Source: Pecten maximus (Eukaryota). From it: a stretch of DNA of 64,000 bases. Position numbers and translations under genes: made by a program. Below the pieces are notes generated by a model. That model was given only the letters and a program-made list of their open reading frames with translations. It made no database searches and had not been told where the DNA came from. Where the stretch lies: the NCBI RefSeq assembly GCF_902652985.1, contig NC_047025.1:40920001-40984000 (forward strand). The letters are read 5' to 3'. Below, piece by piece: positions 126 through 39,900 of this stretch (its first letter is position 1; each line of letters starts with the position of its first letter).

Positions 126-2747
126 TCAGTCTGTGGTATAGATGGCAGCGTATACCTTATAACAAACGATTGATAACACATTTAAGATGATTGCATACAA
201 TATTTAAACTTTATATTTTTTATTCTAAAGTCTACACCTACCTTTGTTACTGCTGTGTTATCTATTCTATATTTTATAGGGAAAAGAAAAAGAAAAAAAA
301 CCTTAAATAATCCTTTATCTACTTGTTGTATTCAATAGATTTACTGAACAATGATTACTGCCAATGGATCACAGCTTTCTTTAAAAATAAACCCAGACTG
401 TTTATAATGAACAGGACAGAACTGAACCGGTACAATGAGATGCAGTAGCATGAAATGTTATACACACGTGTACATATAGAAGGATGGTTTCATCAACATA
501 GTTTATAGGTTACAACGCGCAGATGTTGCACAATATGTTTTTATAGAACACCAAAATATTTTTCGCCGCCACAAAATGTCAGTCCTACTAGTTTGACTTT
601 TTTATATGATTTTAAGCGAAAGAATGATATAGGAAATTCATTTTTGTCATCGTGTATGAACCTTTCTCAATTACCACGATGGCCCGAAATCTGTAATTTG
701 TACACATCAGTAATGATTTCGATGTTATTTTATTATCTACGATATGATAACTGAACTGATAATAGGAATACTTGTGTTATAAGTACTAATATATTTAGAC
801 ACACTTACAAGAGATGATCACAACCATTATTTAAAAGATGTCAGGACAAGATGTATTGGCGTTCGTGTGTTGTGTGAGGAAAGAGATCTCGCAATTCCAT
901 ACCCTACAAATGAAAACCACCAAATTGACGTACGAATAATTTAAGACAAAACGTGTTTAAATCCCTTACCTTATAGGATACCACGATCATCATTCATTAC
1001 AGCACGGAACTCCGACCTTGTCAAATGGAAACTCCCACAAATTAGTGGTATAGGCTGCATTGTACGGAGATGTAATACATATATAGTATGTGGCTCGCCA
1101 ATGATCAACATCCATGATTATAAAATTTCAACATTATTTAAGGTGCAGTTTGACCCAAAATGTTTCTATCGTTTAATTTTCTTTAAATTTTGTCAACTAA
1201 AATAAGTGTATACACTTTGTTAACAAGCGATTTTGTTTTAGTTTTGACCACCAGTTATGGAGATACGGTGTCTCAAACCAACCATCTTTGACATAGAATA
1301 GGATCAAAGTGATAAGTTAAATTGAAAGAAATCAGATGTGTTATTGGATATGACTATATTTTTTTTCTTTTAGATGAGAGATGGCATTGCCCTAGAAATG
1401 ATCCGTTCTCAATTAAATGATTAAAAAATCTGCAATAATGACTGTCTTTTCTTCATATCAACCCTAAATGCGATAGCTTGGTCTCCGAGATCCACCCCTT
1501 TATTATACCAACTTACTTCTATTTGCCTATGGTACCAAGTGTCGAGGTCGATTTTCTTTGCGCACTGACTAATCAAACGTTAAGACAAGATTGACCCGTG
1601 ATTATATTGTTCCCTCTCGTCCCAGATGTTTTATGTGTTGTTGCGATTGGCGAAGAGATGACCCATGTAGATTAAGGTCACAATCCTTTCTCTTTCATTT
1701 ATACTATATTATATAATGACGGAACAAGTTTTATTTACTGTTTGCTGTTCTGTACCAAAGATTTAGAAAAAAAGGTCCGACAGACACTGTTTCATCATAC
1801 ACAGCCAATCTGTACGTGGCGACTGTGTTGATCGGTAAACACTTGTGAAGGTCGCCTGAAGGTCGCCCACCTTGACGAATCCCGAGACAGGAGTTATCAC
1901 AGTAAGTTTGTTTTAGAAGCAATGAAATGTTATCTCCCCGTCTGTGATACGTGTCGTTATCTGACTGAGTTATGACAATATATAAATATAGTCCTGACAC
2001 TTGGGGTTTTGCAGGACAGGTGCAGCGAATGCGTGTTGACGTCGGGGAGAAAAGAAGCCTGCATCAGCAAATTGACAGGTGAAGTTACACTGTAGTTCAG
2101 GAATAGGAAGGATCATGAGAGTAATCTGGTAGTTGTAAATTATTGTTCGAACGACATAATACAATACTATCATACCAGAAGCCTTTGATAAACCATTTAT
2201 CATGGCTAGATACAGAGGCTGGGTAGTGACATTTGACCTCCGGTGTGAGGGTTACGGATGGTTCTTTATTCTGTCACGTTTTTGAAGTGGGGAGAAACAG
2301 CTAGGGAATGGGGTCACAGTTGAATACTGGGATTACACACATTATATCATTTAGCTTAACAACTGCATAGTTCAAAATACAGGTTGAATGTCTCATATGA
2401 CATGGAGTTATGTAAACATTTATCTCCATTTATAGATACAGTCTAGTGTGCTCAGGAATGTCACTCCTAACTATAGCTTTCTACACGAGTGTTCGTGGTA
2501 AATTGATGTAGGTTCAGGTACTCCTATACAGTCACACGATCCTGGCCTCTAAGTATACATACTCTTTGGGAACAGAGACGATAACGAATTGAAAGAAATA
2601 TGTACTTCATTGTATTTTAAGTGGAGTTGAATTAATGGTAAAACTTTTATATATAAGACACCCATGTACAGGCTTTTTACAATTCTCCCTTCAGATGTTG
2701 TCTGGTAACTGGAGCATCATACTTATTATCATCGGTGGGGTGGTTAG

Positions 2748-3472: not shown

Positions 3473-3880
3473 GCCTAATTATAATACAGGTTCCTACACT
3501 CGCCTATATAGCTACCGTTATGACGTACCGGGAAATATTTCATCCTTCGATGATAAAAACAACACTGTGTGCATTTCCGAGTAATTTACCATCACATAAG
3601 TGTTTTTTATATATATATTATGTTTTCTATTATAAATATAACACAGTTAGCAGTGAGATCTTTCCGTGATCATGGTTCTCTATGCATTTAGTCGACACGA
3701 ACTGATCCTACAATGTTTGCAAATTTTGATACGTATTTAAAGAACATTAGTGAGTTTGAAATAAATATGTTTTTGGAGAAAATCAGTGAGTTTGAGATAA
3801 ATTTATTTTATCGAATTTCGTTATAGAGTCCTGCATTCGACTCAATTAAAATCAACATATCCTGCAAGTAAACCTTTACC

Positions 3881-4001
3881 ATGTTGACGACTGTTGGGAA
3901 GACTTGTATAGGCCTTCTTCGCCCTAGTCGTCTCGGCAGACTCCTCGCCACATCAAATGCCGCCGTGTCATCATACCACCCCAAACTACAGACTGTTTCA
4001 G
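3881..4001 (+). CDS. CHDH: HAD-HAD-CHDH fusion gene (copy 1), coding exon 1: mitochondrial presequence MLTTVGKTCIGLLRPSRLGRLLATSNAAVSSYHPKLQTVS
   Basis: ACCATG start; Arg/Ser/Leu-rich peptide with no acidic residues; phase-1 donor G|GTGTGT; homologous exon precedes each of the other four copies. Confidence 0.85.
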
Positions 4002-4685
4002 GTGTGTTGTGTACTATTATATTGTTGTCGTAAAACATACTGATAAATGGAGGGTATCAATGACTTATAATATTAATGAGAATATAGGCCTATAACATAT
4101 AGATAATTGTCTATGATGTTAAGATGTTAATTATGAATGGAAATAAAATATTACACGACAAGGGTATTAACTATTTATTTACGTTTAACACAAATATATA
4201 TGATATTATGTACATTTGAAAAAAATAAATATTTATCCATATTATTGAAAATAAGATAAATAAATAAATAGATAAACAAATGATTAAATGAAAATATTAT
4301 ACATGTATATCACACCTCTTCCAGTTCAGAAACGAATGAACTCTTTCTGTCAATATTATAATGTAATCGAGGCCGGGCATCCCGTCAACGTCCATTATGG
4401 TTGGTTGTTGTCATCTGACCGAACTGGTAGATGTCGAGACATGACTTTCCAAACTGCTTTCCTTCTATTGAAGAAAACGTTGCAATATTACTAAATATAT
4501 TACCATTTTTCGGCATATACTTATGTTTTCGTTAATTCCGTCGTCAGGACATGATCTTATTGTGCTGTTAAAACGTACGTGTAGAAGCTAGGATAAGGAA
4601 TTAACACAAGAGAGACATCCGTTGTACATATGCGATGTCTGAGGAACACACTTTGCCTATCTGTCATACCTTGTCTCTATTCCAG

Positions 4686-4887
4686 GCGTTCGTGGTAACT
4701 TTGCCACATACAGCTCCATAACAGATCATAACGCCACCAAGGCTGAGTTCAGAACCATCAACAGTGTCATACCGACCAAGGCCACTGATGCCGGCAAGAA
4801 GGCATCGCTTGTTATTTTCGACAAAGATGGCACCTTGATATGCTGCCAAGCAATGTGGGCCCCCTGGTCGAGGAAAATAGCATCTAC
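4686..4887 (+). CDS. CHDH: Copy 1 exon 2: start of HAD domain 1 ([10 protein letters not shown])
   Basis: TTCCAG acceptor, in frame with exon 1, HAD motif I DxDGT, phase-2 donor GTAATA. Confidence 0.85.
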
Positions 4888-4991
4888 GTAATATATATCA
4901 TACTTGTCAATTTCATTTCAAACGTTGGTAATGTTCAGATTTTGTGTATGTTTGTTCTTTCATATTAAACATTTTTCTGTATTTTTCAAAA

Positions 4992-4992
4992 G

Positions 4993-5022
<30 letters not shown>
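4992..5022. repeat. (CAT)n microsatellite in intron 2
   Basis: About 10 CAT units. Confidence 0.9.
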
Positions 5023-5023
<1 letters not shown>

Positions 5024-5596
5024 CATTTGTGTCTTTGTCTGAAAGGAAGGATGTATCAATCATGTATTTTACTGTTATATAATACCTCGGGGGAGTGGGG
5101 AGTAGTAAAAGGTCATATATTTAACTGTAGCATAACCATGTATTGATATCAAGATAACGTAAAGTCTGATCATGAACCGATACGATGTTAGGTGTCTGTC
5201 GTTTTCGACCAATCTCAATACCCGTTGACCATCTTTATAATTTAACAAATTTCATTAGATCGCAAAATACAAAATATTACTGGTCTTGATTAGTTAAAGT
5301 ACCCTGGAAACAGCTTTAATCTCGAGTGACACAAAAGTTCTGTCCAAATACGAGGTATTTACACAGCAACTTCCGACATCCCGTCAATTGGATTACCCCT
5401 AAGTGTCAGACTGCTTGAAACATTTGTTTCTTTGGGATGGTAATTAGAATTTTGGAATTGCTTATCGGAATAAGGCGATTGGCCATACGTTTGTAGTTAT
5501 ATAAAATGTTCTGACAAACTTTTTTGAACGCTTTACGTTTTCTCGTAGTTTTACTCTTGAAATACGAACACCTATATCCTCAATTTACCTTTTTAG

Positions 5597-6423
5597 ATTG
5601 GAGGAAGCCACCGGACTAGACATCAAAGAGAAAGTATATAAAACTATTGGGTTCAGTAACTCAACCGACCGAGTAATCTCCGGTTTGCTGGCGGAGGCTA
5701 CCGATAAGATGGTCCAGGATGCTGTAATTGAACTTCTTAAGCAGGAAGGAGTGGATGAGGCCAAAGGCCATGCCCTTGTGCACAGTATATGGGAGGATGG
5801 ACACGGTATTTATGAAACTAAACCTCTAGCAGACTTAAAGACTTTATTTAAGATATTGAAAAGCCATAATATTAAGATTGCTGTTTGCACCTCTGACAGC
5901 AGAAAAGGAACTGAGAACGTTCTGGAAGATTTAGGAATCCGTGGCTTTGTTGATCTTATAGCGTGTGGCGATGACCCAACCAACGTTCCTAAACCTGATG
6001 CATATAATGCTAAGATGATCTGTGAAAAGCTTGGATGTGAGCCCTGAGAATACTGTGATGATCGGAGACACCAAGGCTGATGCGGGTATGGGAAAGGCAG
6101 CACAGTTAGGTTGGAACATTGGGGTACTGAGTGGTGTAGGGCAGACGGATGATTTATACCCTGCGGCCAGTCATGTGATCGAGAGTGTACAGGACATGCT
6201 ACCTCTTATCCTACCAGGAGGATCAATGGAGAGAATGTTACGCCTACTCCAATGACCATAGGATCCTGATCGAACCGTACTCTCTCGAGGTTTCTGATTC
6301 AGATGAGCTTGCTAGTGCTGAGAACCGTGTACCAAATGTTCAGCTGATCATTTTAGATCTCCATGGTACTATTATTTGTGCCCACAGCAGGTACGCCAAC
6401 TGGATGGACCAGATGTGTACAAG
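5597..6423 (+). CDS. CHDH: Copy 1 exon 3: rest of HAD domain 1 and start of HAD domain 2; two apparent +1 insertions (6042-6044 CCC, 6217-6218 GG)
   Basis: TTTTAG acceptor; motifs VCTSD, PKPD, MIGDTKAD, then IILDLHGT, spread over ORFs 5598-6047, 6022-6255 and 6185-6436; phase-2 donor GTCTGT. Confidence 0.8.
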
Positions 6424-6766
6424 GTCTGTACAATAAACGTCTACTTTATAGTCTCTCTATGCTGTTCTTCTTTCGAAATATTCGAGTAATTATCATTTAA
6501 TATCGTAATTAATTATGGGCCGATATACAAGAGAATTATTGCCCAGACTTCTGAATGAGATTCAAAATATTATTAATTTGTATACTCATCAGGGGAAGCA
6601 TGTGTTTCTAAGAGCTTTCCATTGATTTCGTCATTGATAGTCCTACACCTGGCAAGTTTTGCGGTCAAAACACATCTTACATATCTTCACTACCAAAGTG
6701 TGCCATTATAAGTATATGACTTCTACAATAATGATTTTATTAGGGTTTTCATTTTCTTTTCCACAG

Positions 6767-9204
6767 GCTGGAAGAAACCACAGGTCTTTGTGATCTGAAG
6801 TCAGAAATTCACCAGACGCTGGGGATATGTGAAAAAACAGGTAAAATAAAGGATGGCCTGTTGAATGAACACGGGACCACAAATATGGAGGTGAGGTCAG
6901 CGCTGGTAGAGATAATCCATAAACACTTTACATATGAGGAGTCCCTGATGGTTGTCAACAAAGTCTGGCAGGAGTGTGAATCTGCTCTTCTGACCGAACC
7001 GAAATCTCTTCACAAAGACATCAAAAAGTTCTTCAAAACATTAAAGAGGAAAGGAATCAAAATAGCAATATGTACCGGAGATAAACGAGAGCATGCGCTA
7101 TCTGACTTGAAAAATATTGGTGTGTTGAAATATGTTGACATGATGATCTGTGGAGACGACCCTCACTCTGTCTCCAGGTCATCTGACCACAGCACACGTC
7201 TCATCTGTGATGAGCTCAATGTTGACCCAGTGCAAACTGTGATAGTTGGCGATTCGACCAAAGACTTTTCTGTTGGGAAATCAACAAATGTACAAAAAAT
7301 CGGTGTGTTGTCAGGCGTAGGGTCTATGGATGAACTCAAATGGGTCACAGACTTCGTTGTACCCACATTGGATCATGTGATTGACTATCTCATGGATGAT
7401 CCACCTACTAGGTTCAGACAACAGAAGATACCGCCTGCGGTCAGGAAGACGATAGAAGTCGATCCCCACCGTAGACATTTCAGCACCACCTGCCAAGTGA
7501 GGCCAACTTTCTCCAAAAGTATACAGGTGAGAAATGCCTCCACGGTATCAGGAGGTGGATCCACATACGACTACGTCATCATTGGTGCTGGCTCGGCTGG
7601 CTGTACTCTTACCAATCGGCTGTCAGCTGACCCTGAAAACAAGGTGTGTGTTCTGGAGGCTGGTCCAAAAGACTACACCTGGAAGATCCACATGCCTGCT
7701 GCACTCATGTACAATCTGTGTGATGATAAGTACAACTGGTACTACCATACCGAACCAGAACCACACATGAATAACCGAGTCATGTACTGGCCACGAGGGA
7801 CGTGTCTGGGGAGGATCGTCCTCACTCAATGCTATGGTCTACATCCGTGGTAATGCCGGTGATTATGACGGATGGGAAAAGGCTGGAGCGAAAGGATGGT
7901 CTTATGCAGATTGCTTGCCATACTTTAAAAAATCTCAGACTCATGAACTTGGAGAAAATGACTACAGAGGTGGTGATGGTCCACTTCATGTGTCACGTGG
8001 TAGGAGCAACAACCCACTGCATCAGGCCTTTATAGAGGCAGGTCAGCAGGCCGGCTTCCCTTTTACGGACGACATGAACGGCTACCAACAGGAGGGCGTG
8101 GGGTGGATGGACATGACCATTCACAAAGGTCGACGCTGGAGTGCTGCCATGGCCAGCCTCAGGCCCGCACTAAAACGTGACAATGTGACCGTTGAGTCTA
8201 ACGCACTGTCTACCAGGATTGTATTTGAAAACAAGAGAGCCGTCGGTGTAGAGTATGAGCAGAAGGGTGTTAAAAAGATTGTACGAGCAGAGAAGGACGT
8301 GATTCTGAGTGGAGGTTCAATCAACTCTCCTCAGCTCCTCATGTTGTCGGGTGTGGGCAATGCAGATGAACTAAAGGCGCTGGACATCCCTGTGGTTCAA
8401 CACTTGCCAGGTGTTGGGGAGAACCTCCAGGACCACCTTGAGGTGTACGTACAGGAAGCATGCAAGCTTCCCATCACTCTCTATTCTGCTCAGTGGAAGT
8501 TCCCTCATAATATGATCCGCATAGGGCTGCAGTGGTTCCTCACACAGAAAGGTGATGGAGCTTCTGCACACTTGGAGAGTGGAGGGTTTGTCCCAAGCGA
8601 AGAAGGCTTGGAGTATCCTGACATTCAATTCCATTTCCTACCTTCTGTTGTGCAGGATCATGGACGCAAGAACGGCGATGAACATGCGTTCCAACTCCAT
8701 GTGGGATCTCAGCGTGGTACAAGTAGGGGTTATATCAAACTTAAATCTGGCAATCCCAGGGACCATCCAAAGATCGTAGCAAACTACCTGTCCACAGAAA
8801 AAGATGTGAGGACAATGAGATACAGTGTCAAAGTTGCTAGAGAAGTGTTTAAGCAGAAAGCGTTTGATCCTTTCCGTGCTGGTCGGGAATTATCGCCTGG
8901 ACCCGAATGTCAAACAGATGCCGAGATTGATTCCTTCGTCAGGGCTCAAGGCGATAGTGCTTATCATCCATCATGTACATGTAAAATGGGATCGGAGCGT
9001 GACCCAATGGCTGTAGTGGATTCACAAACTCGTGTTTTAGGTGTCGATAACCTCAGAGTTGTTGATGCCTCTATCATGCCAAATGTCATTACTGGGAATC
9101 TTAATGGCCCTACAATCATGCTGGCTGAGAAGGCCGCTGATATCATCCTGGGCAACAAACCACTGCCTCGGTCTACGGCACCTGTGTACAAGAACGATGT
9201 TTAG
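6767..9204 (+). CDS. CHDH: Copy 1 exon 4: rest of HAD domain 2, linker and complete choline dehydrogenase (GMC oxidoreductase); apparent +1 insertion at 7797-7799
   Basis: CCACAG acceptor; GAGSAG FAD motif, WKIHMPAAL, WPRG(R)VWGGSSSLNAMVY, LQDHLE, SAYHPSCTC, GNLN; closely resembles metazoan CHDH. The paralogs read CGA GGA CGT where this copy has an extra G. Confidence 0.92.
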
Positions 9205-9819
9205 ATTGTAACTTTCGCCTTCAGTCGCTGTTCAGAGTAACAACAAACAAACTATTCTGGTGTGCAATCAAATGTAATCCATACTATCATATGATCCTGG
9301 CTTTAATGTAATATTCTTTTTGGGATTGATATTTCTCTGTCCTAACTTCTGGTTAAGGCCGGTCGTTTAATTGCTTCTCTGCCTTAAATACAAACAACGT
9401 GACAATATGTTATGAAAAAGCATGTCGTCTTTATTCTTTTGGATTTTAAGCTGAAATATTTGCAATACAAGATGAAGTTTTCTGATGTGTTGTGATTTCG
9501 TAAAATTTCAAATAGAAAAAAAAACGAACAACGGTGATATATCTAACATCAAACACTAGAGTGAGATGAAAGGACCTGTTTGTATTTTAATCTGTGGGTA
9601 CTCACGATACGACCAATAAATCTCGTCAACCAGAAACCTCCTTTCCCATCTTAAATGGGGCCGGTTCATTTAATTCATACGGAAAAAAATGTTAATGTTA
9701 AATTATCAAATATACTTAACAATTTGATTAAATTGAGGGTACTGGACCTCCCCATTTTGACATCTTTTTAGTATAGTAAGCCAATATATCATTATTTCAT
9801 AGAGCAATATTGATCCAGT

Positions 9820-10319
9820 NNNNNNNNNNNNNNNNNNNNNNNNNNNNNNNNNNNNNNNNNNNNNNNNNNNNNNNNNNNNNNNNNNNNNNNNNNNNNNNNN
9901 NNNNNNNNNNNNNNNNNNNNNNNNNNNNNNNNNNNNNNNNNNNNNNNNNNNNNNNNNNNNNNNNNNNNNNNNNNNNNNNNNNNNNNNNNNNNNNNNNNNN
10001 NNNNNNNNNNNNNNNNNNNNNNNNNNNNNNNNNNNNNNNNNNNNNNNNNNNNNNNNNNNNNNNNNNNNNNNNNNNNNNNNNNNNNNNNNNNNNNNNNNNN
10101 NNNNNNNNNNNNNNNNNNNNNNNNNNNNNNNNNNNNNNNNNNNNNNNNNNNNNNNNNNNNNNNNNNNNNNNNNNNNNNNNNNNNNNNNNNNNNNNNNNNN
10201 NNNNNNNNNNNNNNNNNNNNNNNNNNNNNNNNNNNNNNNNNNNNNNNNNNNNNNNNNNNNNNNNNNNNNNNNNNNNNNNNNNNNNNNNNNNNNNNNNNNN
10301 NNNNNNNNNNNNNNNNNNN
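9820..10319. other. Assembly gap (500 N)
   Basis: N run. Confidence 1.
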
Positions 10320-12073: not shown

Positions 12074-12191
12074 ATGGCGACTGTTAGAAAAACTTGTATA
12101 GGCCTTCTTCGCCCTAGTCGTCTCGGCAGACTCCTCGCCACATCAAATGCTGCCGTGTCATCATACCACCCCAAACTACAGACTGTGTCAG
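12074..12191 (+). CDS. CHDH: CHDH-like copy 2, coding exon 1 (presequence MATVRKTCIGLLRPSRLGRLL...)
   Basis: Near-identical to 3881-4001; ACCATGG; phase-1 donor G|GTGGGT. Confidence 0.85.
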
Positions 12192-13708
12192 GTGGGTTGT
12201 GTACTTTTGAGATGTTGTATAACTTGTATATTATTGGCATTTAATATACAAGTTAAGTATGTGGTTGGGGATATCAGCAAGTTAACACCTGTTTTCCCTC
12301 GACCAAGCCTTTTTCTTTCGCCTCAGAAAAGAGGGAAAACTAGATGTTAGCTATATGTGTGTCGTAGAAGGGCACGGCCCCGAAGCGGCAAGGGTTTGAC
12401 AGATGAGAAATTATGTTGATATTGTTCCCATTATGTATCTTTTCGTAGCAAATACGGAACCCATGGCTATCTAAGGTATTTCTAGACGTGATCAGATGGT
12501 TGTATGTGGTGCCGTGTTCTCGGGGCCTTTCACAACACTTGATAGATCGCCAAAATTACTTAACGAGCATGGTGGAATTTACATTGCTTTTAAACAGGGA
12601 TAATGCTTAAAATGTGTTTGAAAATGATAAAAAAAAACATTGCACATTTACTATCACAATTTTTGTGTTGCCCATGGGGTCCCGTCTGTCGGTGGCGCAT
12701 GAGGACGCGACTGTGTATAATGTATAAGCATGAACTTTGTTATATTCGCTGTACAGATGACTTAATCCAATCTCCTTTGTGAAGAAGAAACAACAGAGTA
12801 GCCAAGGTATAAATACCATATCTGTATGTAGACATACACATTGGAATCGTTATTGGCACTGCACGTCATGAAGCATGAGAGCATTCAACACCAACGCTGT
12901 CACTGTGGGGAATCCTTCACGCCAGAGTTCACCTCGAACAACATACCAAACGTAAACATGAGACCCATCCAATAGAAATATGTCAAAAATGCAGGAAAAC
13001 TTTGAAGTCCTCGTCGACGGTGTTTTATCATATAAAATTAAAACACGGCGGTGAAGGTTATTCATTATCACAATGTGAAACTTTTGTCGAGGATAACTAT
13101 CCACTTGTTAGACATACGAGAAGAAAACTATTAATTGCGATAAGTGTGCAAACAACATCAAAACCTTAGTTGGCCATTCAAGTTCCGAAAGGAAAACACG
13201 GAAATTCCAGTGTAACTTTTGCAACAGACTTTTTATTATAAACCGGTATCTAGTTAAACATATGGAAATGTAAAAAGACCATTCGGGATCAATACCGTTT
13301 GGATTGTGGCAAGATATATTCGTATTCATCGAGCCTAAATCACCACAAGAAGTCACGTGTTTAAAAAGACATTCATTGTGATATTTGATATTTGATCTGA
13401 ACTTTTCAGATATGTAATACCTATAATATTTCCATCCTTGTTGGAACAATATCATATGGTGTCGGGTACCATCATGCTTCCTGGCTTGTGCAAGCGACGA
13501 TTCCAATGTGTACTTTTTCGTTCAGATGGCATATGTACCATGATTTCCCTGCTGTTTCTTGTTTACAAGGATATTTGGTAGTAAATGTGCACATTAAGGG
13601 TTTCTCGTAAAACAATCGGCATTTTACGTGTTTTAAAACAATTTTTGATCATTCTCTAACATTTTCAAGCATTTAAGATACAGTATACATCTCTGGGTTC
13701 CGTAATAT

Positions 13709-14754
13709 ATAGAGGATATTGAATGGTTTCCCGTTTAATATAACATATATTTCACGAGTATGACAGAATATCGATATCACGAGTGAAAAATATCGAAATA
13801 TTCTGTCATACGAGTGAAATATATGTTATACTAAACGGGAAACCCTTCAATTGTTTTTTTTATTGCATTTAAGCATTGATGTCAATTTTTTTTTAGTTTC
13901 ATCGGGTTTTAAATTAGAAAATCATTTTCAAAAATTTATTATAAGCGTTGATGTCAATTATTTTTTAGTTTCATCGGGGTATGAAACAAATTTTGTTTGC
14001 AAACTGTATGAATCCGCGTAGCGGATTCTTACAGAAGTGTGCAAACAAAATTTGTTTGCAAACTGTATGAATCCGCGTAGCGGATTCTTACAGAAGTGTG
14101 CAAACAAAATTTGTTTCATACCCCGATGAAACTAAAAAATAATTGACATCAACGCTTATAATAAATTTTTGAAAATGATTTCCTAATTTAAAACATGTTT
14201 TATGTACAATTTTACTGGTTTTAAATGGGATTCTTTTTCTCAAATCAATACGCAACGTCAATTGTCGTATTGTGACGTCACATTCTCGGAATTTCTTTCA
14301 TAGAAGAATGAAAAGAGTTTTTTCGACCAATCACATTTGAGTATTTACCATGAAAACAAAGAAAAAATAATTATTTCATATTGATCTTCTTAAAAACAAA
14401 ATTAAAAACATCTAAAATTTATAGTTTCAAAAAGTGCGGGAATTCATGACGTCATCTCTTTGTGACGTTACTCCACGTCAATTTGACGGCGCTATTTTGA
14501 AAGGACTTATCAACGCAATTTAAGCGTTTTCCGCTGTTATCGGAGAAACTGTGCATGAATAGCTAAAGTCCAGCTAGTATTTTGTCTAAAACAAATCTGA
14601 ATATTTCAGAAATACAGCAAAATAACCAATTTATCTATCTCCGCTTCGACTGGAAAAATCAGTAAGTTTCAATGAGGTGAATACAAAGGTTAGCTCTGAC
14701 ACGGAAAACTATATACATGTATAACTATATTTCACTGGCAAAAATGCAATAAAA
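13709..14754. mobile_element. Family A element (opposite orientation), interrupted by family B
   Basis: Starts ATAGAGGATATTGAATGG, ends GCAATAAAA; uninterrupted counterpart at 49078-49613. Confidence 0.75.
13871..14374. mobile_element. Family B palindromic non-autonomous element nested in family A
   Basis: Long inverted repeat with apex GAATCCGCGTAGCGGATTC (duplicated); absent at the homologous site near 49450. Confidence 0.75.
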
Positions 14755-15269
14755 GTATTTGCTACGAATGATACCTTATGGGAACAATTTCAATATGATT
14801 TCTCACATCCGTGCCGCTTCGGAGACGCGTGCCCTACTACAACGCATAGCCGTGCTCCTAAATGTGGCGGTATACACGGTGTTCTTGGTGATGTATGGTT
14901 TTCTTGTTCAAAGAAATTTATTTTGTAACCTATACCAATTTTTATTTAAAAAAAATAATCTTAATACCTGATAATATATTTATCACGACGTCCATCTTTA
15001 TTTGAAGGCGTTCCTGTAAAGGTAAAGGTTTTATATAATAAACATTAACAATAATGTTATTATATATGTAGGCTATCAAATTATGAATATAGTTACAATA
15101 GGACGAGAACTGTAAATAATCTATAATATAAATAGTGTTTATAGAAAAGGAACGTGATATATTTTTCTCTCTTTTTTTATATCTACATATTCTGACGTTA
15201 TTTGCAAATTATTTACATTAAATGGTTCCCATTTACTAGTAACACAATATTTTGTTTCGGTGTTATCAG

Positions 15270-17182
15270 GTGTGGGGTCTACGGATGATCTGAAGTGTGA
15301 CACAGACTTGGTTGTACCCACAGTAGACCATGTGCTTGACCATATCTTGGAGAATCTACCAGCCAGTCCCATCAAACAGCAGGTACCCCCAGATGCAATT
15401 CTTGCCACAAGGAAGTCAGGGGGAGTGAATGTCCAATGTAGGTTGTTCAGCACCACCTGTCATGTGAGGCCAACTTTTTCCAGTAGTATACAGGTGAGAA
15501 ATGCCTCCACGGTATCAGGAGGTGGATCCACATACGACTACGTCATCATTGGTGCTGGCTCGGCTGGCTGTACTCTTACCAATCGGCTGTCAACTGACCC
15601 TAACAACAAGGTGTGTGTTGTGGAGGCTGGTCCAAAAGACTACACCTGGAAGATCCACATGCCTGCTGCGCTCATGTACAATCTGTGTGATGATAAGTAC
15701 AACTGGTACTACCATACCGAACCAGAACCACACATGAACAACCGTGTCATGTACTGGCCACGAGGACGTGTCTGGGGAGGATCGTCCTCACTCAATGCCA
15801 TGGTGTACGTGCGTGGCAATGCCGGTGATTATGACGGATGGGAAAAGGCTGGAGCGAAAGGATGGTCTTATGCAGATTGCTTGCCATATTTTAAAAAATC
15901 ACAAACCCACGAACTTGGAGAAAACGACTACAGAGGTGGTGATGGTCCACTTCATGTGTCGCGTGGGAGGAGCAACAACCCTCTGCATCAGGCCTTTATA
16001 GAGGCAGGTCAGCAGGCCGGCTTCCCTTTTACGGACGACATGAACGGCTACCAACAGGAGGGCGTGGGGTGGATGGACATGACCATTCACAAAGGTCGAC
16101 GCTGGAGTGCTGCCATGGCCAGCCTCAGGCCCGCACTAAAACGTGACAATGTGACAGTGGAATCTAACGCACTGTCTACCAGGATTGTGTTTGAGAACAA
16201 GAGAGCTGTTGGTGTAGAGTATGAACAGAAGGGTGTTAAAAAGATTGTACGAGCAGAGAAGGATGTGATTCTGAGTGGAGGATCAATCAACTCTCCTCAG
16301 CTCCTCATGTTGTCGGGTGTGGGCAATGCAGATGAACTTAAGGCGCTGGACATCCCTGTGGTTCAACACTTGCCTGGTGTTGGGGAGAACCTCCAAGACC
16401 ACCTTGATGTTACTGTACAAGAAGCATGCAAGCTTCCCATCACCCTCTATTCTGCTCAGTGGAAGTTCCCTCATAATATGATCCGCATAGGGCTGCAGTG
16501 GTTCCTCACTCAGAAAGGTGATGGAGCTACCACACATTTTGAGAGTGGAGGGTTTGTTCCAAGTGAAGAGAACCTCGAGTACCCTGACATCCAGTTCCAT
16601 TTTGTACCTGTAGCTACGAATGATCATGGGCGCAAAACTGGGAATGAACACGCTTACCAAATCCACGCTGGACCTATGCGTGCGACAAGTAGGGGCTATA
16701 TCAAATTGAAATCCCGGAATCCTAGAGACCACCCAAAGATCGTAGCCAACTATTTGTCCACAGAATATGATGTGAGGACAATGAGAGACTGTATCAAAGT
16801 TGCTAGGGAAGTGTTCAAACAAAAGGCGTTTGATTCTTTCCGTGCTGGTCGGGAACTATCGCCTGGACCTGAATGTCAAACAGATGCCGATATCGATGCC
16901 TTCAATCGTGCTAACGCAGACACCGACTATCACCCATCATGTACATGTAAAATGGGATCGGAGAGTGACCCAATGGCTGTGGTGGATTCTCAAACTCGTG
17001 TTCTAGGTGTCGATAACCTCAGAATTGTTGATGCCTCTATCATGCCAAATATCATTACTGGGAATCTTAATGGCCCTACAATCATGCTGGCTGAGAAGGC
17101 TGCTGATATCATCCTAGGCAACGAACCACTGCCTCCGTCTACGGCTCCTGTGTACAAAAACTATGTACAGGACGGTAAATGA
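15270..17182 (+). CDS. CHDH: CHDH-like copy 2, exon 2 (HAD-less; 676 aa spliced protein)
   Basis: Intact GMC ORF 15260-17182; TTATCAG|GT acceptor joins exon 1 in frame. Confidence 0.92.
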
Positions 17183-18484: not shown

Positions 18485-19245
18485 ATCAGCTTAGTACCCT
18501 AAACTGGGTATCTACCTTTTTAGTACCGGTCACATCAACTTAGTACCCTAAACTGGGTATCTACACTTTAGTACCGGACATCAACTTAGTACCCTAATCT
18601 GGGTATCTACCTTTTTAGTACCGGTCACATCAACTTAGTACCCTAAACTGGGTATCTACACTTTAGTACCGGACATCAACTTAGTGCTCTAAACTGGGTA
18701 TCTACCTTTTTAGTACCCTAAACTGAGTATCTACCTTTTTAGTACCGGACACATCAATTTAGTACCCTAAACTGGGTATCTACCTTTTTAGTACCGGACA
18801 CATCAATTTAGTACCCTAAACTGGGTACCTACCTTTTTAGTACCGGACTTCATCTTAATACCCTAAACTGGGTATCTACCTTTCTAGTACGGACATCAAC
18901 TTAGTACCCTAAACTGGTTATCTACCTTTTTAGTACCGGAAGCATCAATTTAGTTACCTAAACTGGGTATCTACCTTTTTAGTACCGGACTTCAACTTAA
19001 TACCCTAAACTGGGTATCTACCTTTCTAGTACGGACATCAACTTAGTACCCTAAACTGGTTATCTACCTTTTTAGTACCGGAAGCATCAATTTAGTTACC
19101 TAAACTGGGTATCTACCTTTTTAGTACCGGAAGCATCAATTTAGTTACCTAAACTGGGTATCTACCTTTTTAGTACCGGAAGCATCAATTTAGTTACCTA
19201 AACTGGGTATCTACACTTTAGTACCGGACTTCAACTTAATACTCC
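18485..19245. repeat. About 49-bp minisatellite (TTAGTACCCTAAACTGGGTATCTACCTTTTTAGTACCGGACACATCAAC)
   Basis: About 15 copies. Confidence 0.95.
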
Positions 19246-20625: not shown

Positions 20626-21154
20626 GAATGTACGACGCTTTACATGTATATCGGTAAGATCTTGTTAGGAATGTAAAGTATCATGGGATCTATATGATGC
20701 AATTTCATTAGTACAGATGAATTCTCGTGTATACATATACATGTTGTTCTTTTGTGGGGTTTTCTATGCTACGACCGGCTATCAGCTACGACTATGGTCT
20801 AGTGTTGTGTTTCACTGGATACAGTGTGGATTGTGTTACTGTTGTAATCCCTGGTACAGTATTACCCACCATACTATTGCTTATAACAGGTCTGGAGTCG
20901 TGTAAGTGAGCGTATAATCATTGTAAGTAATGAGGCAGCATTGTTTGTCAGCCATTCGCAAGGATAACTAGGTCAGAGTTTTAACAGGTAAAATGTAATA
21001 TAACCCAGGTAAGTATCACGCGATCATCCCAATTATCATATGAAGTAATTGATAGAAATTTGTATATATACGAGTGGTGTATTCCCCGTGTCCAATGGCG
21101 GCGGCTCACAGGAAGGAATTCTTCATACCGTACAGTTCGATATATAACATTGTC

Positions 21155-23725
21155 AGTATGACAATTATATTCCTGTAACTTTATCATTGTGATAATTACA
21201 CTTTCTGTAACTTTATCATTGTGATAATTACACTTTCTGTAACTTTATCATTGTGATAATTACACTTTCTGTAACTTTTGTAAGTATTATGATAATTCTT
21301 CCTCAAATTTTGTCAGAATGATAATTGCACTTCCTGTAATTCTGTCAGTATGATAATTATACTTCCTGTCATTTGATAAGTATGATAATTATACTTTCTG
21401 TAATTCTGTCAGTATGATAATTATACTTCCTGTCATTTGATAAGTATGATAATTATACTTCCTGTAATAATGTCAGTATGATATTTATACTTTCTGTAAT
21501 TCTGTCAGTATGATAATTATACTTCCTGTCATTTGATAAGCATGATAATTATACTTTCTGTAATTCTGTCAGTATGATAATTATACTTCCTGTCATTTGA
21601 TAAGCATGATAATTATACTTCCTGTAATTCTGTCAGTATGATAATTGCACTTCCTGTAATTCTGTCAGTATGATAATTGCACTTCCTGTAATTCTGTCAG
21701 TATGATAATTATACTTCCTGTAATTCTGTCAGTATGATAATTGCACTTCCTGTAATTCTGTCAGTATGATCATTATACTCCTGTAATTCTGTCAGTATGA
21801 TAATTATACTTCCTGTAATTCTGTCAGTATGATCATTATACTCCTGTAATTCTGTCAGTATGATAAATATACTTCCTGTAATTCTGTCAGTATGATAATT
21901 ATACTTTCTGTAAATCTGTCAGTATGATAATTATACTTCCTGTAATTCTATCAGTATGATAATTATATTTTCTGTAATTATGTCAGTATGATAATTATAC
22001 TTCCTGTAATAATGTCAGTATGATAATTATACTTTCTGTAATTCTGTCAGTATGATAATTATACTTTCTGTTATTCTATCAGTATGATAATGATACTTCC
22101 TGTAACTTTGTCAGTATGATAATTATACTTCCTGTAATTCTGTCAGTATGATAATTATACTTCCTGTAATTCTGTCAGTATGATCATTATACTCCTGTAA
22201 CTTTGTCAGTATGATAATTATACTTCCTGTAATTCTATCAGTATGATAATTATACTTCCTGTAATTCTATCAGTATGATAATTATACTTCCTGTAATTCT
22301 GTCAGTATGATAATTATACTTCCTGTAATTCTGTCAGTATGATAATTATACTTCCTGTAATTCTGTCAGTATGATAATTATACTTTCTGTAATTCTGTCA
22401 GTATGATAATTATACTTCCTGTAATAATGTCAGTATGATAATTATACTTTCTGTAATTCTGTCAGTATGATTATTATACTTCCTGTCATTTGATAAGTAT
22501 GATAATTATACTTCCTGTAATTCTGTCAGTATGCTAATTATACTTCCTGTAATAATGTCAGTATGATCATTATACTTCCTGTAAATATGTCAGTATGACA
22601 ATTATACTTCCTGTAACTTTGTCAGTATGATAATTATACTTCCTGTAATTCTATCAGTATGATAATTATATTTTCTGTAATATTCTGTCATTATGATAAT
22701 TATACTTTCTGTTATTCTATCAGTATGATAATTATATTTTCTGTAATTCTGTCAGTATGATAATTATACTTCCTGTAATTCTATCAGTATGATAATTATA
22801 TTTTCTGTAATTCTGTCAGTATGATAATTATACTTCCTGTAATAATGTCAGTATGATAATTATACTCCTGTAATTTTGTCAGTATGATAATTATATTTCC
22901 TGTAATTCTGTCAGTATGATAATTATACTTCCTGTAATTCTGTCAGTATGATCATTATACTCCTGTAACTTTGTCAGTATGATAATTATACTTCCTGTCA
23001 TTTGATAAGTATGATAATTATACTTCCTGTAATTATTTCAGTATGATAATTAAACTTCCTGTAATTCTGTCAGTATGATAATTATACTTCCTGTAATTTT
23101 GTCAGCATGATAATTATGCTTCCTGTAATTTGGTCAGTATGATCATTATACTCCTGTAACTTTGTCAGTATGATAATTATATTTCCTGTAATTCTGTCAG
23201 TATGATAATTATACATCTTGTGATTTTGTCAGTATGATAATTATATTTCCTGTAATTTTGTCAGTATGATAATTATACTTCCTGTAATTCTGTCAGTATG
23301 ATAATTCTACTCCTGTATCTTTGTCAGTATGATAATTATACCTCCTGTAATTTTGTCAGTATGATAATTATATTTCCTGTAATTCTGTCAGTATGATAAT
23401 TCTACTCCTGTAATTATGTCAGTATGATAATTATAATTCCTGTAATTCTGTCAGTATGATAATTATACTTCCTGTAATTCTGTCAGTATGATAATTATAC
23501 TTCCTGTAATTCTGTCAGTATGATAATTATACTTCCTGTAATTCTGTCAGTATGATAATTATACTTCCTGTAATTCTGTCTGTATGGTATTTATACTTCC
23601 TGTAATTCTGTCAGTATGATATTTATACTTCCTGTAATTCTGTCAGTATGATAATTATACTTCCTGTAATTCTGTCAGTATGATAACTATACTTCCTGTC
23701 ATTCTGTCAGTATGAAAATTATATA
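21155..23725. repeat. 32-bp minisatellite (CAGTATGATAATTATACTTCCTGTAATTCTGT), about 80 copies
   Basis: Continuous array with period 32. Confidence 0.97.
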
Positions 23726-24115: not shown

Positions 24116-24200
24116 ATGACCACTGTTTTGAAAACGGGTATCAGCATATTTCGACCATCTGCAGTGTCCCCGTACCGCCCCATCCTACAGACTGTGTTAG
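24116..24200 (+). CDS. CHDH: CHDH-like copy 3, coding exon 1 (shortened presequence MTTVLKTGISIFRPSAVSPYRPILQTVL)
   Basis: CACCATG; homologous to exon 1 of copies 1 and 2 with an 11-codon deletion; phase-1 donor G|GTGTGT. Confidence 0.8.
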
Positions 24201-24458
24201 GTGTGTAGTGTACAGCTGATTGGTACAGAACAGATGTAGTATCTACCTATTCATATTTGTATTTGATTATTTTCAACTCGACATCGACAAAACCAGGGCA
24301 AACTACGAACAAACCAGAGCCCCACAGGACTTATCGACCACCCGAGTTCAGAAGTATACTGATAAATTATATTTTACTTTTAAAATAAGATTATCGCATC
24401 CCACCACGTGTCCTAGTAGAGAAAGGCTTGTTCATTTGAACAAACTTCATAGCTATTC

Positions 24459-24548
24459 CAATCTAATTAAAATCTAGATGGTCAATATCACTACGTTACA
24501 TGAACATCGTTCATGTAACGTAGTGATAATGACCATCTAGTTAGATTG
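24459..24548. mobile_element. 90-bp foldback MITE with 9-bp TSD TAGCTATTC (Mutator-like)
   Basis: CAATCTAA...TTAGATTG ends, near-perfect palindrome, TSD on both sides, empty site at about 38908-38917. Confidence 0.85.
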
Positions 24549-25196
24549 TAGCTATTCATACCAGGATACCCACCGACTAATGTTATAATACTAGGCATAT
24601 TAGTTTTTGGGAAATAGATTGGTGTCATTCATCACTGTATGTCATTGGCCTAATATCATTAAACTAGACTTTTTGTTTGGGTTGTTAAGAAATTATTTGA
24701 AAAAAATTGGCCGCTGTGGCCATGATAGAACTTTGACTTTGCTCTAGCATGCTACCGGCATGATACCAGGAATATGTGCCTCTTATTATTATCATTTTTT
24801 ATAAAATTATAGAGTTGCTTAAAAATATTAAGACATTTGACCCAAGTGCCATTGAAAGCAGGTCAATGTCAATTATTTGAACAGACTTGTTAGTCCTTCA
24901 TCCCAGTATCATACTGGCCCATTAGCATGACCCTGTGTCACTTGGCTATTGCGAAGTCGGTCATCTGACCTCCTGTGACTTTAAAAGTAGATCAAGGATT
25001 TTGGTAGCCCTACATCCAAGCATGCCGCTGACCAAAATTCATGACACTTTGTAGATTGTTTAAGGACGCGCGAAGCTGGACAAATGACGTTTAGAATAGT
25101 GCTCTTTAGACTTTGTCCTCAGGTGATCTGAAACCTAAATTTACATAGAGAAAATATGAACAGTTGAGTCGGACACGGAGGCGTGGTCTGTTTCAT

Positions 25197-25555
25197 TGCT
25201 CCGATAGCTTAGTCAGAGCGCCGACCACGTAACTTCAGGTGAGGTGGCAGCGATATTTAAGTCAGAACGCCGGACACGTAGCCTCAGGTGAGGGGGCTGC
25301 GATAGCTAGGTCAGAACGCCGGCCACGTAACCTCAGGTGAGGGGGCTGCGATAGCTAAGTCAGAACGCCGGCGACGTAACCTCGGGTGAGGGGGCTGCGA
25401 TAGCTAAGTCAGAACGCCGGCCACGTAGCCTCAGGCGAGGGGCCTGCGATAGCTAAGTCAAAACGCCGGCCACGTAACCTCAGGTGAGGGGGCTGCTATA
25501 GCTAAGTCAGAACGCCGGCCACGTAACCTCAGGTGAGGGGCCTGCGATAGCTTAT
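25197..25555 (+). repeat. 49-bp GC-rich tandem repeat x7 resembling a tRNA/SINE 5' head
   Basis: Unit GCGATAGCTAAGTCAGAACGCCGGCCACGTAACCTCAGGTGAGGGGGCT; first unit begins GCTCCGATAGCTTAGTCAGAGCG. Confidence 0.85.
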
Positions 25556-25951
25556 TCAGTTACAGCGCAAGACAAACATAAGAAACATTAGACTTAGAGG
25601 AGTTGAAATTGAAAGTCTCTGCTCTGTAACCTGTTCTGATAGGTTCCTCGATATAATCAGCTTTGTATGAAAACAAACAATAAGGACACCAAGAGATGGG
25701 CGGTTTGTTCCCAAATAAATATCTTTCGTCAGCAATGATGCAGAAATTAAACTCTCACGATTTCATCCTCGACGTACTTCCTGGGTCCGTCCATCTTTCT
25801 AAGAAGGCGTTCCTTAAGTTTGGAATGGGATATGTTAGTGTAAAGATTTGAAATGATTTATATGAACAATGATTTTATTATATATGTAGCTATGCTATCA
25901 AATAATTGATATAGTTACAACAGAACGAGAATTGTCAATGATATATTATAT

Positions 25952-26799
25952 AAATAGAGGTTACACAACGAGTGATGTTGGATATGGAATTTATTTCACA
26001 CGAGTAATTTATTCTTGTTTTTTGCAACTTTTTAAAAATAACTTACGAGTGTGAAATAAATTCCATATCCAACAATTTCGAGTCGTATGACCTGTTTCAT
26101 TTCGCGTATGCGTAAATAAAGTGTACCGGTGACGTCCGGGACCCGTTGATGTGACGTCATTAGATTATTGATGACGTCAATAACAAATGCAGCTTGGGTC
26201 AAAGTTCACCGTGTTAGCCAATCAAAATGCGCACAAAGTTTATACCACGTGTGGTATAAACAGATTGTTAATCAACAGCTGTAATGATTAACTGATGATC
26301 TGAGAGTTGAATAACACAGGGTATTGTGGTAGAAATAGAGGTTACACAACGAGTGGTTGTTGGATATGGAATTTATTTCACACGAGTAAGTTATTTTTTT
26401 AAAGTTACAAAAGACACGAGCTTTAGCGAGTGTTTTTTGCAACTTTTAAAAAATATCTTACGAGTGTGAAATAAATTCCATATCCAACAATTTCGAGTCG
26501 TTTGACCTGTTTCTACCACAATAATATCGGCTTGAATCAAAGGGAAACGTGGACAAGTATAATGTCACGTATGCAAATAAAGTGTACCGGTGACGTCCGG
26601 GACCCGGTGATGTGACGTCTTTAGATTATTGATGACGTCAATAACAATTGCAGCTTGGGTCAAAGTTCACCGTGTTAACCAATCAAAATGCGTACAGAGT
26701 TTATACCACGTGTGGTATAAACAGATTGTTAATCAACAGCTGTAATGATTAACTGATGGTCTGAGAGTTGAATAACACAGGGTATTGTGGTAGAAATAG
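25952..26799. mobile_element. Family D Crypton-like non-autonomous element, head-to-tail dimer bounded by AAATAG
   Basis: AAATAG at 25952, 26333 and 26794; internal long palindrome; homologous empty site TATAAATAGTGTTT at about 15127-15140. Confidence 0.75.
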
Positions 26800-26918
26800 T
26801 GTTTATAGACAAGAAAAGTAATATATTTTTCTCGTTTGAAAATTCTGACGTTATGTTTTAATTCTTTGCATTAAAAGATTCCCATTTAACTCAATATTTT
26901 GTTTCGGTGTGTTACCAG

Positions 26919-31980: not shown

Positions 31981-31984
31981 ATAA

Positions 31985-33575: not shown

Positions 33576-33968
33576 GTTACAGGTGTGGGTATATATAATC
33601 CAATGCCACTTTGTTGTTCATGGTAGTTTTATTATCCATTAATAAAACCCTACAATTACAAGAAATACTAATCATACACACATACATACTAAACTACAGA
33701 CATGACAATCAAGGGACATAACTCTTACATGTAACATATTTGAACCGATAACAAAGAGATGGCACAATTTCTGTTATAAATACGTTAACAGAACCAAATA
33801 CTAATACATTTATGTTTTTAGAATACACATATCGATAACTAGAATATATCAAACTAGTTATTCACCATTTAGACACAATAGATATACAAATATCAAATTA
33901 GGAAATTATCCCTACCTTTATCACTTACATTACTATTAATATATATAAAACATTGGTAATTTCCTGGA

Positions 33969-34468
33969 NNNNNNNNNNNNNNNNNNNNNNNNNNNNNNNN
34001 NNNNNNNNNNNNNNNNNNNNNNNNNNNNNNNNNNNNNNNNNNNNNNNNNNNNNNNNNNNNNNNNNNNNNNNNNNNNNNNNNNNNNNNNNNNNNNNNNNNN
34101 NNNNNNNNNNNNNNNNNNNNNNNNNNNNNNNNNNNNNNNNNNNNNNNNNNNNNNNNNNNNNNNNNNNNNNNNNNNNNNNNNNNNNNNNNNNNNNNNNNNN
34201 NNNNNNNNNNNNNNNNNNNNNNNNNNNNNNNNNNNNNNNNNNNNNNNNNNNNNNNNNNNNNNNNNNNNNNNNNNNNNNNNNNNNNNNNNNNNNNNNNNNN
34301 NNNNNNNNNNNNNNNNNNNNNNNNNNNNNNNNNNNNNNNNNNNNNNNNNNNNNNNNNNNNNNNNNNNNNNNNNNNNNNNNNNNNNNNNNNNNNNNNNNNN
34401 NNNNNNNNNNNNNNNNNNNNNNNNNNNNNNNNNNNNNNNNNNNNNNNNNNNNNNNNNNNNNNNNNNNN
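33969..34468. other. Assembly gap (500 N) at the mirror axis
   Basis: N run. Confidence 1.
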
Positions 34469-39166: not shown

Positions 39167-39251
39167 CTAGCACAGTCTGTAGGATGGGGCGGTATGGGGA
39201 CACTGCAGATGGTCGAAATATGCTGATACCCGTTTTCAAAACAGTGGTCAT
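39167..39251 (-). CDS. CHDH: CHDH-like copy 4, coding exon 1
   Basis: Same 28-aa peptide as 24116-24200; phase-1 donor. Confidence 0.8.
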
Positions 39252-39649: not shown

Positions 39650-39900
39650 TGTATAATTATCATACTGACAGAATTACAGGAAGTATAATTATCACACTGA
39701 CAGAATTACAGGAAGTATAATTATCACACTGACAGAATTACAGGAAGTATAATTATCACACTGACAGAATTACAGGAAGTATAATCATTATACTGACAAA
39801 ATAAGAGGAATTATAATCATTATACTGACAAAAGTTACAGAAAATGAAATTATCATAATGATAAAGTTACAGGAAGTATAATTATCATACTGACAAAGTT
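39650..39900. repeat. Short version (about 8 copies) of the 32-bp minisatellite
   Basis: Reverse complement of the 21155-23725 unit at the homologous position. Confidence 0.9.

Follow-up and report, generated by a model that had tools for sequence, protein, structure and literature searches.

The stretch of DNA analysed here, called the window below, comprises 64,000 nucleotides of the scallop Pecten maximus (contig NC_047025.1 of the RefSeq assembly GCF_902652985.1, positions 40,920,001 to 40,984,000 of the forward strand; C11:40920001-40984000), and positions are counted from its first letter. It holds five paralogues of choline dehydrogenase (CHDH), the first of which, at 3881-9204 on the + strand, is LOC117338208. 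This gene encodes a protein of 1194 amino acid residues that joins, in this order, a presequence, a first HAD domain (HAD1), a second HAD domain (HAD2), a linker and a BetA-type CHDH. The gene, its splicing and this domain order are established by the evidence given in the following.

The structure of the gene was read from contigs of four runs (two RNA and two DNA, from three studies), which were placed on 3700-9400 at a likeness of at least 96%; these are contigs and not raw reads. Three introns, 4001|4686, 4887|5597 and 6423|6767, all with GT..AG boundaries, were found by contig mapping in both RNA runs, and the three joints are absent from both DNA runs (the mapped joints 3998>4683 and 6421>6765 were cut at +3 and +2, respectively, and 4887>5597 was used as is). 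A single RNA contig of 1321 nt joins exons 1, 2 and 3 with the start of exon 4, a second one runs from 6036 to 7515 and crosses intron 3, and RNA contigs cover 6765-9400. The first coding exon (3826-4001, from the RNA joint) carries the ATG at 3881 and presequence residues 1-40 and ends at a phase 1 donor, and exon 2 (4686-4887, from the RNA joints) contains the end of the presequence and motif I of HAD1, D-K-D-G-T, at 4820-4834. Exon 3 (5597-6423) encodes the cap and core of HAD1 with motifs II-IV, the spacer between the HADs and motif I of HAD2, D-L-H-G-T, at 6356-6370, as given by the Pfam matches HAD_2 and Hydrolase_like, the joints and the open reading frame (ORF) of the upstream paralogue. 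Exon 4 (6767-9204, from ORFs and RNA) encodes the remaining HAD2, the linker and the whole CHDH up to the stop codon at 9202-9204, and the 3' untranslated region extends past 9400. All four exons lie on the + strand. Moreover, the same 30 letters are joined before 3825 in the RNA contigs of both runs, and they match 2047-2076, followed by AG|GTGAAG; since they stand before a GT donor, they represent an upstream non-coding exon, so that the 3' end of the 5' untranslated exon is placed at 2047-2078 (+ strand).

In the raw assembly, the reading frame of this gene is broken. Alignment to an intact upstream twin, described below, revealed exactly three +1 insertions in the coding sequence of the window copy, at 6035 (or 6033), 6217 and 7797 of the + strand, which shift the frame near 6035 (from frame 3 to 1), near 6217 (from frame 1 to 2) and at 7797, inside the CHDH motif W-P-R-G-R-V-W-G-G-S-S, so that three frames are needed to read exon 3 and two to read exon 4. 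Every contig of all four runs omits one letter at each of the three sites, at 6217 and 7797 at full depth in 4/4 runs; therefore, the three extra bases are assembly errors and the gene is intact. When they are dropped, the four coding exons amount to 3585 nt and 1194 residues, and the corrected model is identical to the RefSeq entry 'LOW QUALITY PROTEIN: uncharacterized protein LOC117338208' except at residue 254, because the placement of the first deletion is ambiguous. On the + strand, Pfam matches to HAD_2/Hydrolase fall in the ORF pieces 5598-6044, 6022-6252 and 6861-7850 and those to GMC_oxred_N/C in 7834-9201, with the ORFs 6861-7853 and 7834-9204 in the region of exon 4, and the whole protein shows two HAD stretches followed by GMC N and C. 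An earlier note on this DNA, made from the letters alone, had proposed four exons with GT-AG boundaries, phases 1, 2, 2 and a product of 1194 residues; the boundaries are borne out by the RNA, whereas the phases and the length come out right only after the three bases have been dropped. It had also described an uninterrupted frame at 6767-7796, without mentioning that 7796 abuts the third insertion and without reporting the frame breaks; the frame 6768-7853 is indeed open across HAD2, the linker and the N-terminus of CHDH. That HAD2 continues into CHDH rests on this open frame and on overlapping contigs, in which no joint occurs at this place. In addition, the ratio of nonsynonymous to synonymous substitutions (dN/dS) against the upstream twin is 0.19 for HAD1, 0.23 for HAD2, 0.55 for the linker and 0.11 for CHDH, which indicates that every domain is under purifying selection.

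The domain limits were taken from Pfam and from an AlphaFold2 (AF2) model of the whole protein, whose pTM of 0.44 makes it usable for domain limits only and not for packing. The first 60 residues contain 7 R/K and 1 D/E, and residues 1-76 have a pLDDT of 24-29; the N-terminus is thus arginine-rich, acid-poor and disordered, a composition that fits a matrix-targeting presequence, and the earlier note's reading as one gene is supported. HAD1 (residues 81-312, 4805-6210 on the + strand, split by intron 2) is a HAD-IA phosphatase with a helical cap, its pLDDT being 80-94 and its cap helices lying at residues 94-176, between motifs I and II. The complete catalytic set of HAD-IA motifs I-IV is present (D86/D88/T90, T206, K240 and D265/D269), and the four motifs reported from the letters alone, D86-K-D-G-T90, C-T206-S-D, P-K240-P-D and G264-D-T-K-A-D269, were all recovered. 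Across 30 fusions, D86, K87, G89 and T90 are invariant, and the four motifs as a whole are invariant or nearly so. Because the catalytic residues are all invariant, HAD1 is very probably an active phosphomonoesterase. HAD2 (residues 356-592, 6341-7394 on the + strand, split by intron 3; Pfam, motif alignment and AF2) is a variant HAD with D361-L-H-G-T, T486, R520 in place of the motif III lysine and D545/D549. Among the fusions, D361, G364 and D545 are invariant, and the D+2 position and motif III are not conserved: D+2 is histidine in molluscs and asparagine in some gastropods, and the motif III lysine is replaced by arginine or lost. HAD2 thus lacks part of the HAD-IA motif set and keeps the HAD fold (pLDDT 75-85), and a standard phosphatase mechanism appears doubtful for it. 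Furthermore, a phase-2 intron interrupts both HADs about 20 residues past motif I, a shared position characteristic of a tandemly duplicated two-exon unit. Judged by sequence, the HAD forms part of a separate clade that is uncharacterised and recognisable by the letters just past the nucleophile, the signature F-D-K-D-G-T-L-(I/V)-C-F-H-S-M-W being found in all single-HAD and stand-alone forms.

The C-terminal part (residues 648-1194, 7560-9201 on the + strand) has the marks of a full-length BetA-type choline dehydrogenase, as the earlier note had held. It scores 779.6 bits against TIGR01810 (betA), above the equivalog cut-off of 732.1, and 840.8 bits against NF002550 (cut-off 605); in the whole protein, GMC_oxred_N and GMC_oxred_C are matched by Pfam at E 9e-60 and 1.2e-38, respectively. 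It aligns end to end with its best solved relative, 9lq0 'oxygen-dependent choline dehydrogenase' (E = 4.8e-147), with which it has the catalytic histidine region and the pocket motif D-H-L-E in common. The G-x-G-x-x-G motif for binding flavin adenine dinucleotide (FAD), G656-A-G-S-A-G661, is invariant in the fusions, as are H939 and H1116, and E941 is kept in 90% or more of the sequences.

Between HAD2 and CHDH lies a disordered, presequence-like linker (residues 593-647, 7395-7559 on the + strand; AF2 and composition). Its residues 594-646 have a pLDDT of 25-30 and contain 10 R/K against 4 D/E, and the linker is hypervariable and unalignable between phyla. One motif stands out from this background: R-x-[FYL]-[SA]-[TS] occurs within 60 residues before the GMC/FAD fold in 36 of 40 named fusions, where composition-preserving shuffles give an expectation of 1.3. 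In the scallop it reads R619-H-F-S-T623 (7473-7487, + strand), lies in the disordered linker at the junction of the two enzymes and, by its conservation, is a candidate site at which the mitochondrial processing peptidase (MPP), and after it Icp55, would cut the chain internally. In MPP sites an arginine at -2/-3 is the rule (PMC8835746), and in yeast Arg5,6 the processing peptidase cuts an internal presequence-like site, after which Icp55 trims one residue; the composite precursors listed (Arg5,6, Atp25, Etp1 and Rsm22-Cox11) are fungal or plant, and none is animal (PMC8734313). The precursor is probably cut after import into two proteins, HAD-HAD and mature CHDH. Cleavage is favoured because nematodes and tunicates encode the halves separately, because the HAD-less scallop paralogues keep the linker motif, and because the position of this motif corresponds to the end of the presequence in unfused CHDHs.

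To determine how the architecture is distributed, the HAD2, HAD1 and CHDH parts were each used as queries in protein searches. Proteins of about 1190 residues with the order HAD-HAD-CHDH are found in scallops, oysters, mussels, clams, freshwater bivalves, many gastropods and the cephalopod Argonauta, and beyond molluscs in the nemerteans Lineus and Tubulanus, the annelid Owenia and the flatworm Macrostomum. A single HAD precedes CHDH in proteins of about 860-1100 residues from amphioxus, two hemichordates, two crinoids, two copepods, a nematomorph and an acoel; two protist transcriptome entries show the same form and were treated with caution. The HAD stands alone in nematodes and tunicates, as a protein of about 300 residues with a presequence-like N-terminus, and vertebrate CHDH is without a HAD among the entries listed. 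The HAD clade is thus fused to CHDH in most invertebrate phyla. The earlier note had named a lack of orthologous fusions in related species as a refutation; such fusions are present in dozens of species of many phyla, clearly in the note's favour, and the architecture is thus not confined to molluscs. Every single-HAD fusion keeps the canonical D-K-D-G-T type. Motif I of mollusc HAD2 is D-x-H/N-G-T, and in nemerteans both HADs are canonical; in Owenia the first HAD is divergent (D-K-N-G-T), and in flatworms the second one is (D-K-D/N-G-S). From this pattern, the degenerating HAD copy differs between phyla. A quick HAD tree gave clean mollusc HAD1 and HAD2 clades, its deep branches being unresolved; the tandem HAD duplication may be common to molluscs, nemerteans and annelids (support 86-87). 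That more than ten phyla maintain this pattern of fusion and fission argues strongly, at the genomic level, for a function in common, and the conserved fusion ties CHDH to an uncharacterised clade of mitochondrial HAD phosphatases.

The other scallop copies bear on the same question. The sixth of the tandem paralogues is the intact twin, at a distance of 11-17 kb upstream of the window; no further close CHDH was found in the scallop genome in a search of 918,306,378 bases in 3983 contigs. Located in C11:40903001-40913000, with exons at about 331-448, 5357-5558, 6250-7074 and 7409-9851 of that stretch, it has the order HAD-HAD-CHDH and 1195 residues in the model; its exon 3 is an ORF of 296 residues and its last exon one ORF of 782 residues, running from HAD2 through the whole CHDH. 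An RNA contig with the twin's 5' end exists, and the twin is therefore expressed; this contig cross-maps to exon 1 of the window copy. The twin's RefSeq isoform X2, of 1051 residues, begins inside HAD1. HAD exons are present only in the twin and in the first copy of the window. In paralogues 2-5, tblastn found no HAD exons down to E = 50, and these copies are therefore truly without HADs. In paralogue 2 (12074-17182, + strand), the presequence exon 12074-12191 is spliced to 15270-17182, leaving about 25 residues of the former HAD2. Paralogue 3 (24116-28777, + strand) matches the RefSeq 'choline dehydrogenase, mitochondrial-like' of 647 residues, paralogue 4 (35953-39260, - strand) has 642 residues, and paralogue 5 (46658-52814, - strand) is an inverted twin of paralogue 2. 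In all HAD-less copies the presequence exon is spliced straight to an acceptor, T-T-A-T-C-A-G|G-T, within former HAD2 codons, so that about 25 HAD2 residues and the linker are retained, and the RefSeq models of paralogues 3 and 4 agree. All six close scallop CHDH genes descend from the fused form. Moreover, the HAD-less copies have D-H-L-D or D-H-F-N instead of D-H-L-E, and T-D-Y-H instead of S-A-Y-H beside the catalytic histidine, and these changes in the pocket motifs suggest an altered substrate. The loss of the HADs and the change of the pocket go together, which fits a coupled function.

The array itself is a large inverted duplication, in which 11300-33968 mirrors 34469-54000 around an assembly gap at 33969-34468; copy 2 and copy 5 share 95.7% identity over 4.9 kb, and copy 3 and copy 4 share 90.9%. 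The flanking satellites are mirrored as well: those at 31984-33576 and 34469-35111 have a 36-bp unit, and those at 18709-19242 and 40748-45174 have a 49-bp unit. Further satellite arrays lie at 58945-63995 (45-bp unit, about 110 copies), 21151-23723 (32-bp, about 80 copies) and 52905-53501 (47-bp, about 13 copies). The presequence exons (3881-4001, 12074-12191 and 52814-52697 in the window, and 331-448 in the stretch of the twin) share 92-97% identity, with a synonymous divergence (dS) of 0.09 versus 0.26-0.50 elsewhere in the gene, and this suggests gene conversion at the 5' end of the paralogues.

The possible substrate of HAD1 was approached through its relatives. Its best solved relatives in the PDB sequence search are generic HAD-IA proteins, and no link of HAD1 to the known phosphocholine phosphatases was found by the Pfam and PDB sequence searches. 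The closest bacterial relatives are found in metagenome-assembled genomes of Chloroflexota; they share 35-41% identity, are collinear through the cap domain and have conserved cap residues in common with the animal HAD. At about 20 Chloroflexota loci the HAD gene directly follows genes for a PhnS-like binding protein, two permeases and a PhnT2-like ATPase, which scores 432.7 bits with TIGR03265 (cut-off 457.7). Furthermore, an Opu-type importer, whose binding protein is an OpuAC protein (Pfam, 1e-39), is located 1-6 kb upstream of the HAD in 11/11 loci with enough flank. The order of this conserved cluster is Opu-type importer, PhnS-like protein, two permeases, PhnT2-like ATPase, a HAD of the animal HAD's clade and a large GAF-GGDEF-EAL protein. 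This genomic context is the only independent hint to an aminoalkyl or quaternary-amine phosphate or phosphonate as substrate, the class that the earlier note had proposed.

Taken together, LOC117338208 is intact and transcribed, and we consider it fairly likely that it encodes a composite mitochondrial precursor that works as follows. The N-terminal presequence would bring the whole chain into the matrix, where the processing peptidase would cut after the presequence and, as we hold with a slight leaning, again at R-H-F|S-T in the linker, which would yield equal amounts of HAD-HAD and mature CHDH. HAD1 would, with good probability, act as a phosphomonoesterase. Its substrate may tentatively be placed among the aminoalkyl or quaternary-amine phosphates that feed or regulate choline oxidation; phosphocholine itself is a more doubtful candidate. 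In molluscs, HAD2 would serve as a regulatory or scaffold partner rather than as a second phosphatase. The one-gene route from phosphocholine to betaine in the earlier note thus stands as far as the single gene is concerned; that it acts as one polypeptide in the organelle is unlikely, as the linker keeps the processing motif, and its end product has to be amended, since CHDH yields betaine aldehyde and not betaine. The far-reaching form of this proposal, that CHDH in most invertebrate phyla is made as a precursor together with a dedicated aminoalkyl-phosphate (phosphocholine) phosphatase and is separated from it by the processing peptidase, is improbable in our estimate. If true, polyproteins of the Arg5,6 type would have their first animal example, and glycine-betaine synthesis in animals would gain its missing step of choline release, one that vertebrates have lost.

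Several points weigh against the composite-precursor proposal. No single RNA contig of the two RNA runs bridges 7516-7547; the DNA contigs also break there, where the six paralogues turn near-identical, and the break is therefore a graph effect of the paralogues. The motif may persist for import (Tom70 binding) or as a part of mature CHDH, and both the cleavage and the phosphatase activity are predictions from sequence. As for the substrate, the family models give HAD1 only sub-threshold matches to phosphoglycolate phosphatase, PhnX-like and PpaX proteins, with all NCBIfam scores far below their cut-offs. PF06888 (PHOSPHO1/PECP1) has no match to the protein at E<=1 in Pfam, and no phosphorylcholine phosphatase or PchP chain is among the 30 PDB matches at E<=0.01 or among the best 60 for the stand-alone orthologue. 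At 55 loci of the bacterial HAD relatives, no GMC/BetA gene was found within 8 kb, and the best NCBIfam match of the OpuAC protein, 'choline ABC transporter substrate-binding protein', is weak (70.8 against 379 bits). The bacterial context is, moreover, one observation from one lineage. In addition, phosphocholine is not known to be taken up into the matrix of mitochondria.

Other explanations were weighed against the same evidence. The HAD could be unrelated to choline, being a metabolite-repair or sugar-phosphate phosphatase or a non-catalytic regulator that shares the promoter and import signal of CHDH. Its generic best family matches (phosphoglycolate phosphatase, PpaX, PhnX-like), the absence of BetA beside the bacterial relatives and the lack of the D+2 acid and motif III lysine in mollusc HAD2 speak for this, and HAD substrates change easily. 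However, a chance pairing would not persist in more than ten phyla, the stand-alone forms also have presequence-like N-termini, the specificity-setting cap residues are conserved from bacteria to animals, and the HAD-less scallop paralogues have also altered the substrate pocket residues of CHDH; we thus regard this explanation as unlikely. A little less probable still is an uncleaved bifunctional enzyme, in which HAD1 would dephosphorylate phosphocholine and pass the choline to CHDH on the same chain. Against it, the linker is long, disordered and, except for a textbook processing motif, hypervariable, nematodes and tunicates use separate genes, four scallop paralogues lost the HADs and kept the motif, and HAD1 has no similarity to PchP or PHOSPHO1. 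These points stand against the single open frame that joins HAD2, linker and CHDH, the conservation of the fusion for hundreds of millions of years, the precedent of Acinetobacter MtlD, which combines a HAD phosphatase and a dehydrogenase for osmolyte synthesis, and the bacterial context with its hints at quaternary-amine or aminoalkyl-phosphate substrates. That the window copy is a decaying pseudogene of the upstream paralogue, as the three frameshifts in the assembly and the RefSeq label 'LOW QUALITY PROTEIN' would have it, is highly improbable and was rejected, since the RNA and DNA contigs of four runs from three studies lack all three extra bases, the gene is spliced and transcribed, and the dN/dS of its domains is 0.11-0.23. 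A gene-model artefact, in which neighbouring HAD-HAD and CHDH genes were read as one, could call upon the stretch 7516-7547 without a bridging RNA contig and is practically dismissed by the absence of any stop codon, intron or intergenic DNA between HAD2 and CHDH in the window copy and the twin, by the break of the DNA contigs at the same spot as a graph effect of the paralogues, and by the same single-ORF junction in many independent assemblies and transcriptome-derived proteins.

The composite precursor is of interest for several reasons. Glycine betaine, which mitochondria produce from choline, is a main osmolyte in marine invertebrates, so the fusion bears on the source of choline for betaine and on the matching of supply to oxidation. 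It offers a concrete candidate enzyme with few substrates to consider, and both the stand-alone gene of nematodes and the mitochondria of oysters make it tractable. If the linker motif is truly cleaved, internal MPP processing, documented in fungi and plants, would extend to a widespread animal protein. In addition, studies of betaine gene expression in shellfish should allow for the extra domains and the HAD-less paralogues. No description of the HAD-CHDH architecture was found in the literature searched on choline dehydrogenase and phosphocholine phosphatases, and an oyster paper on betaine genes does not mention the extra domains. The gene models are already public under the names 'uncharacterized protein' or 'choline dehydrogenase, mitochondrial-like', so the fusion is not new data; it is best filed as a widespread CHDH variant with an uncharacterised HAD clade and a probable internal processing site, for which no paper was found.

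Among known systems, the best-scoring family models for HAD1 and its Chloroflexota relatives are TIGR03351, the PhnX-like 'phosphonatase-like hydrolase', and the bacterial phosphoglycolate phosphatases. TIGR03351 proteins neighbour aminoethylphosphonate-type transporters, and the Chloroflexota HAD relatives adjoin transporters of this type. However, HAD1 reaches 96.5 bits against TIGR03351, far below the cut-off of 218.9, and its D+2 residue is the aspartate of phosphatases and not the alanine of a true phosphonatase. PchP and PHOSPHO1/PECP1 resemble HAD1 in the chemistry of the superfamily, with an aspartyl-phosphate intermediate and Mg2+, and the expression of PchP is tied to choline and betaine catabolism (PMC3170909). 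They differ in having no specific sequence similarity to HAD1 and in the motif I context and the cap, and PchP is periplasmic. MtlD of Acinetobacter baylyi (NF046057; PDB 7ocn) is similar to the fusion in that an N-terminal HAD-IA phosphatase is combined with a dehydrogenase making a compatible solute, and its HAD domain is a detectable relative (PDB match, 7e-5). Unlike the fusion, it has another dehydrogenase fold and another solute, its phosphatase acts after the dehydrogenase, and it is a bacterial, cytoplasmic protein that stays one chain. Precursors of the Arg5,6 type likewise carry two enzymes each, with a presequence-like junction in which arginine stands at -2/-3 and an aromatic residue would be removed by Icp55, and their halves are separate genes in other lineages; their cleavage is demonstrated, whereas that of the fusion is only predicted, and the scallop halves are not known to act in consecutive steps. 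Finally, vertebrate CHDH and BetA match residues 648-1194 as a full-length enzyme with the FAD fold, D-H-L-E, H-P-S-C-T-C-K-M-G and a presequence-type motif just upstream of the fold. The fusion differs from them by about 590 extra N-terminal residues, consisting of a second, true N-terminal presequence and the two HADs that vertebrate CHDH is without, and the ancestral CHDH presequence has become an internal linker.

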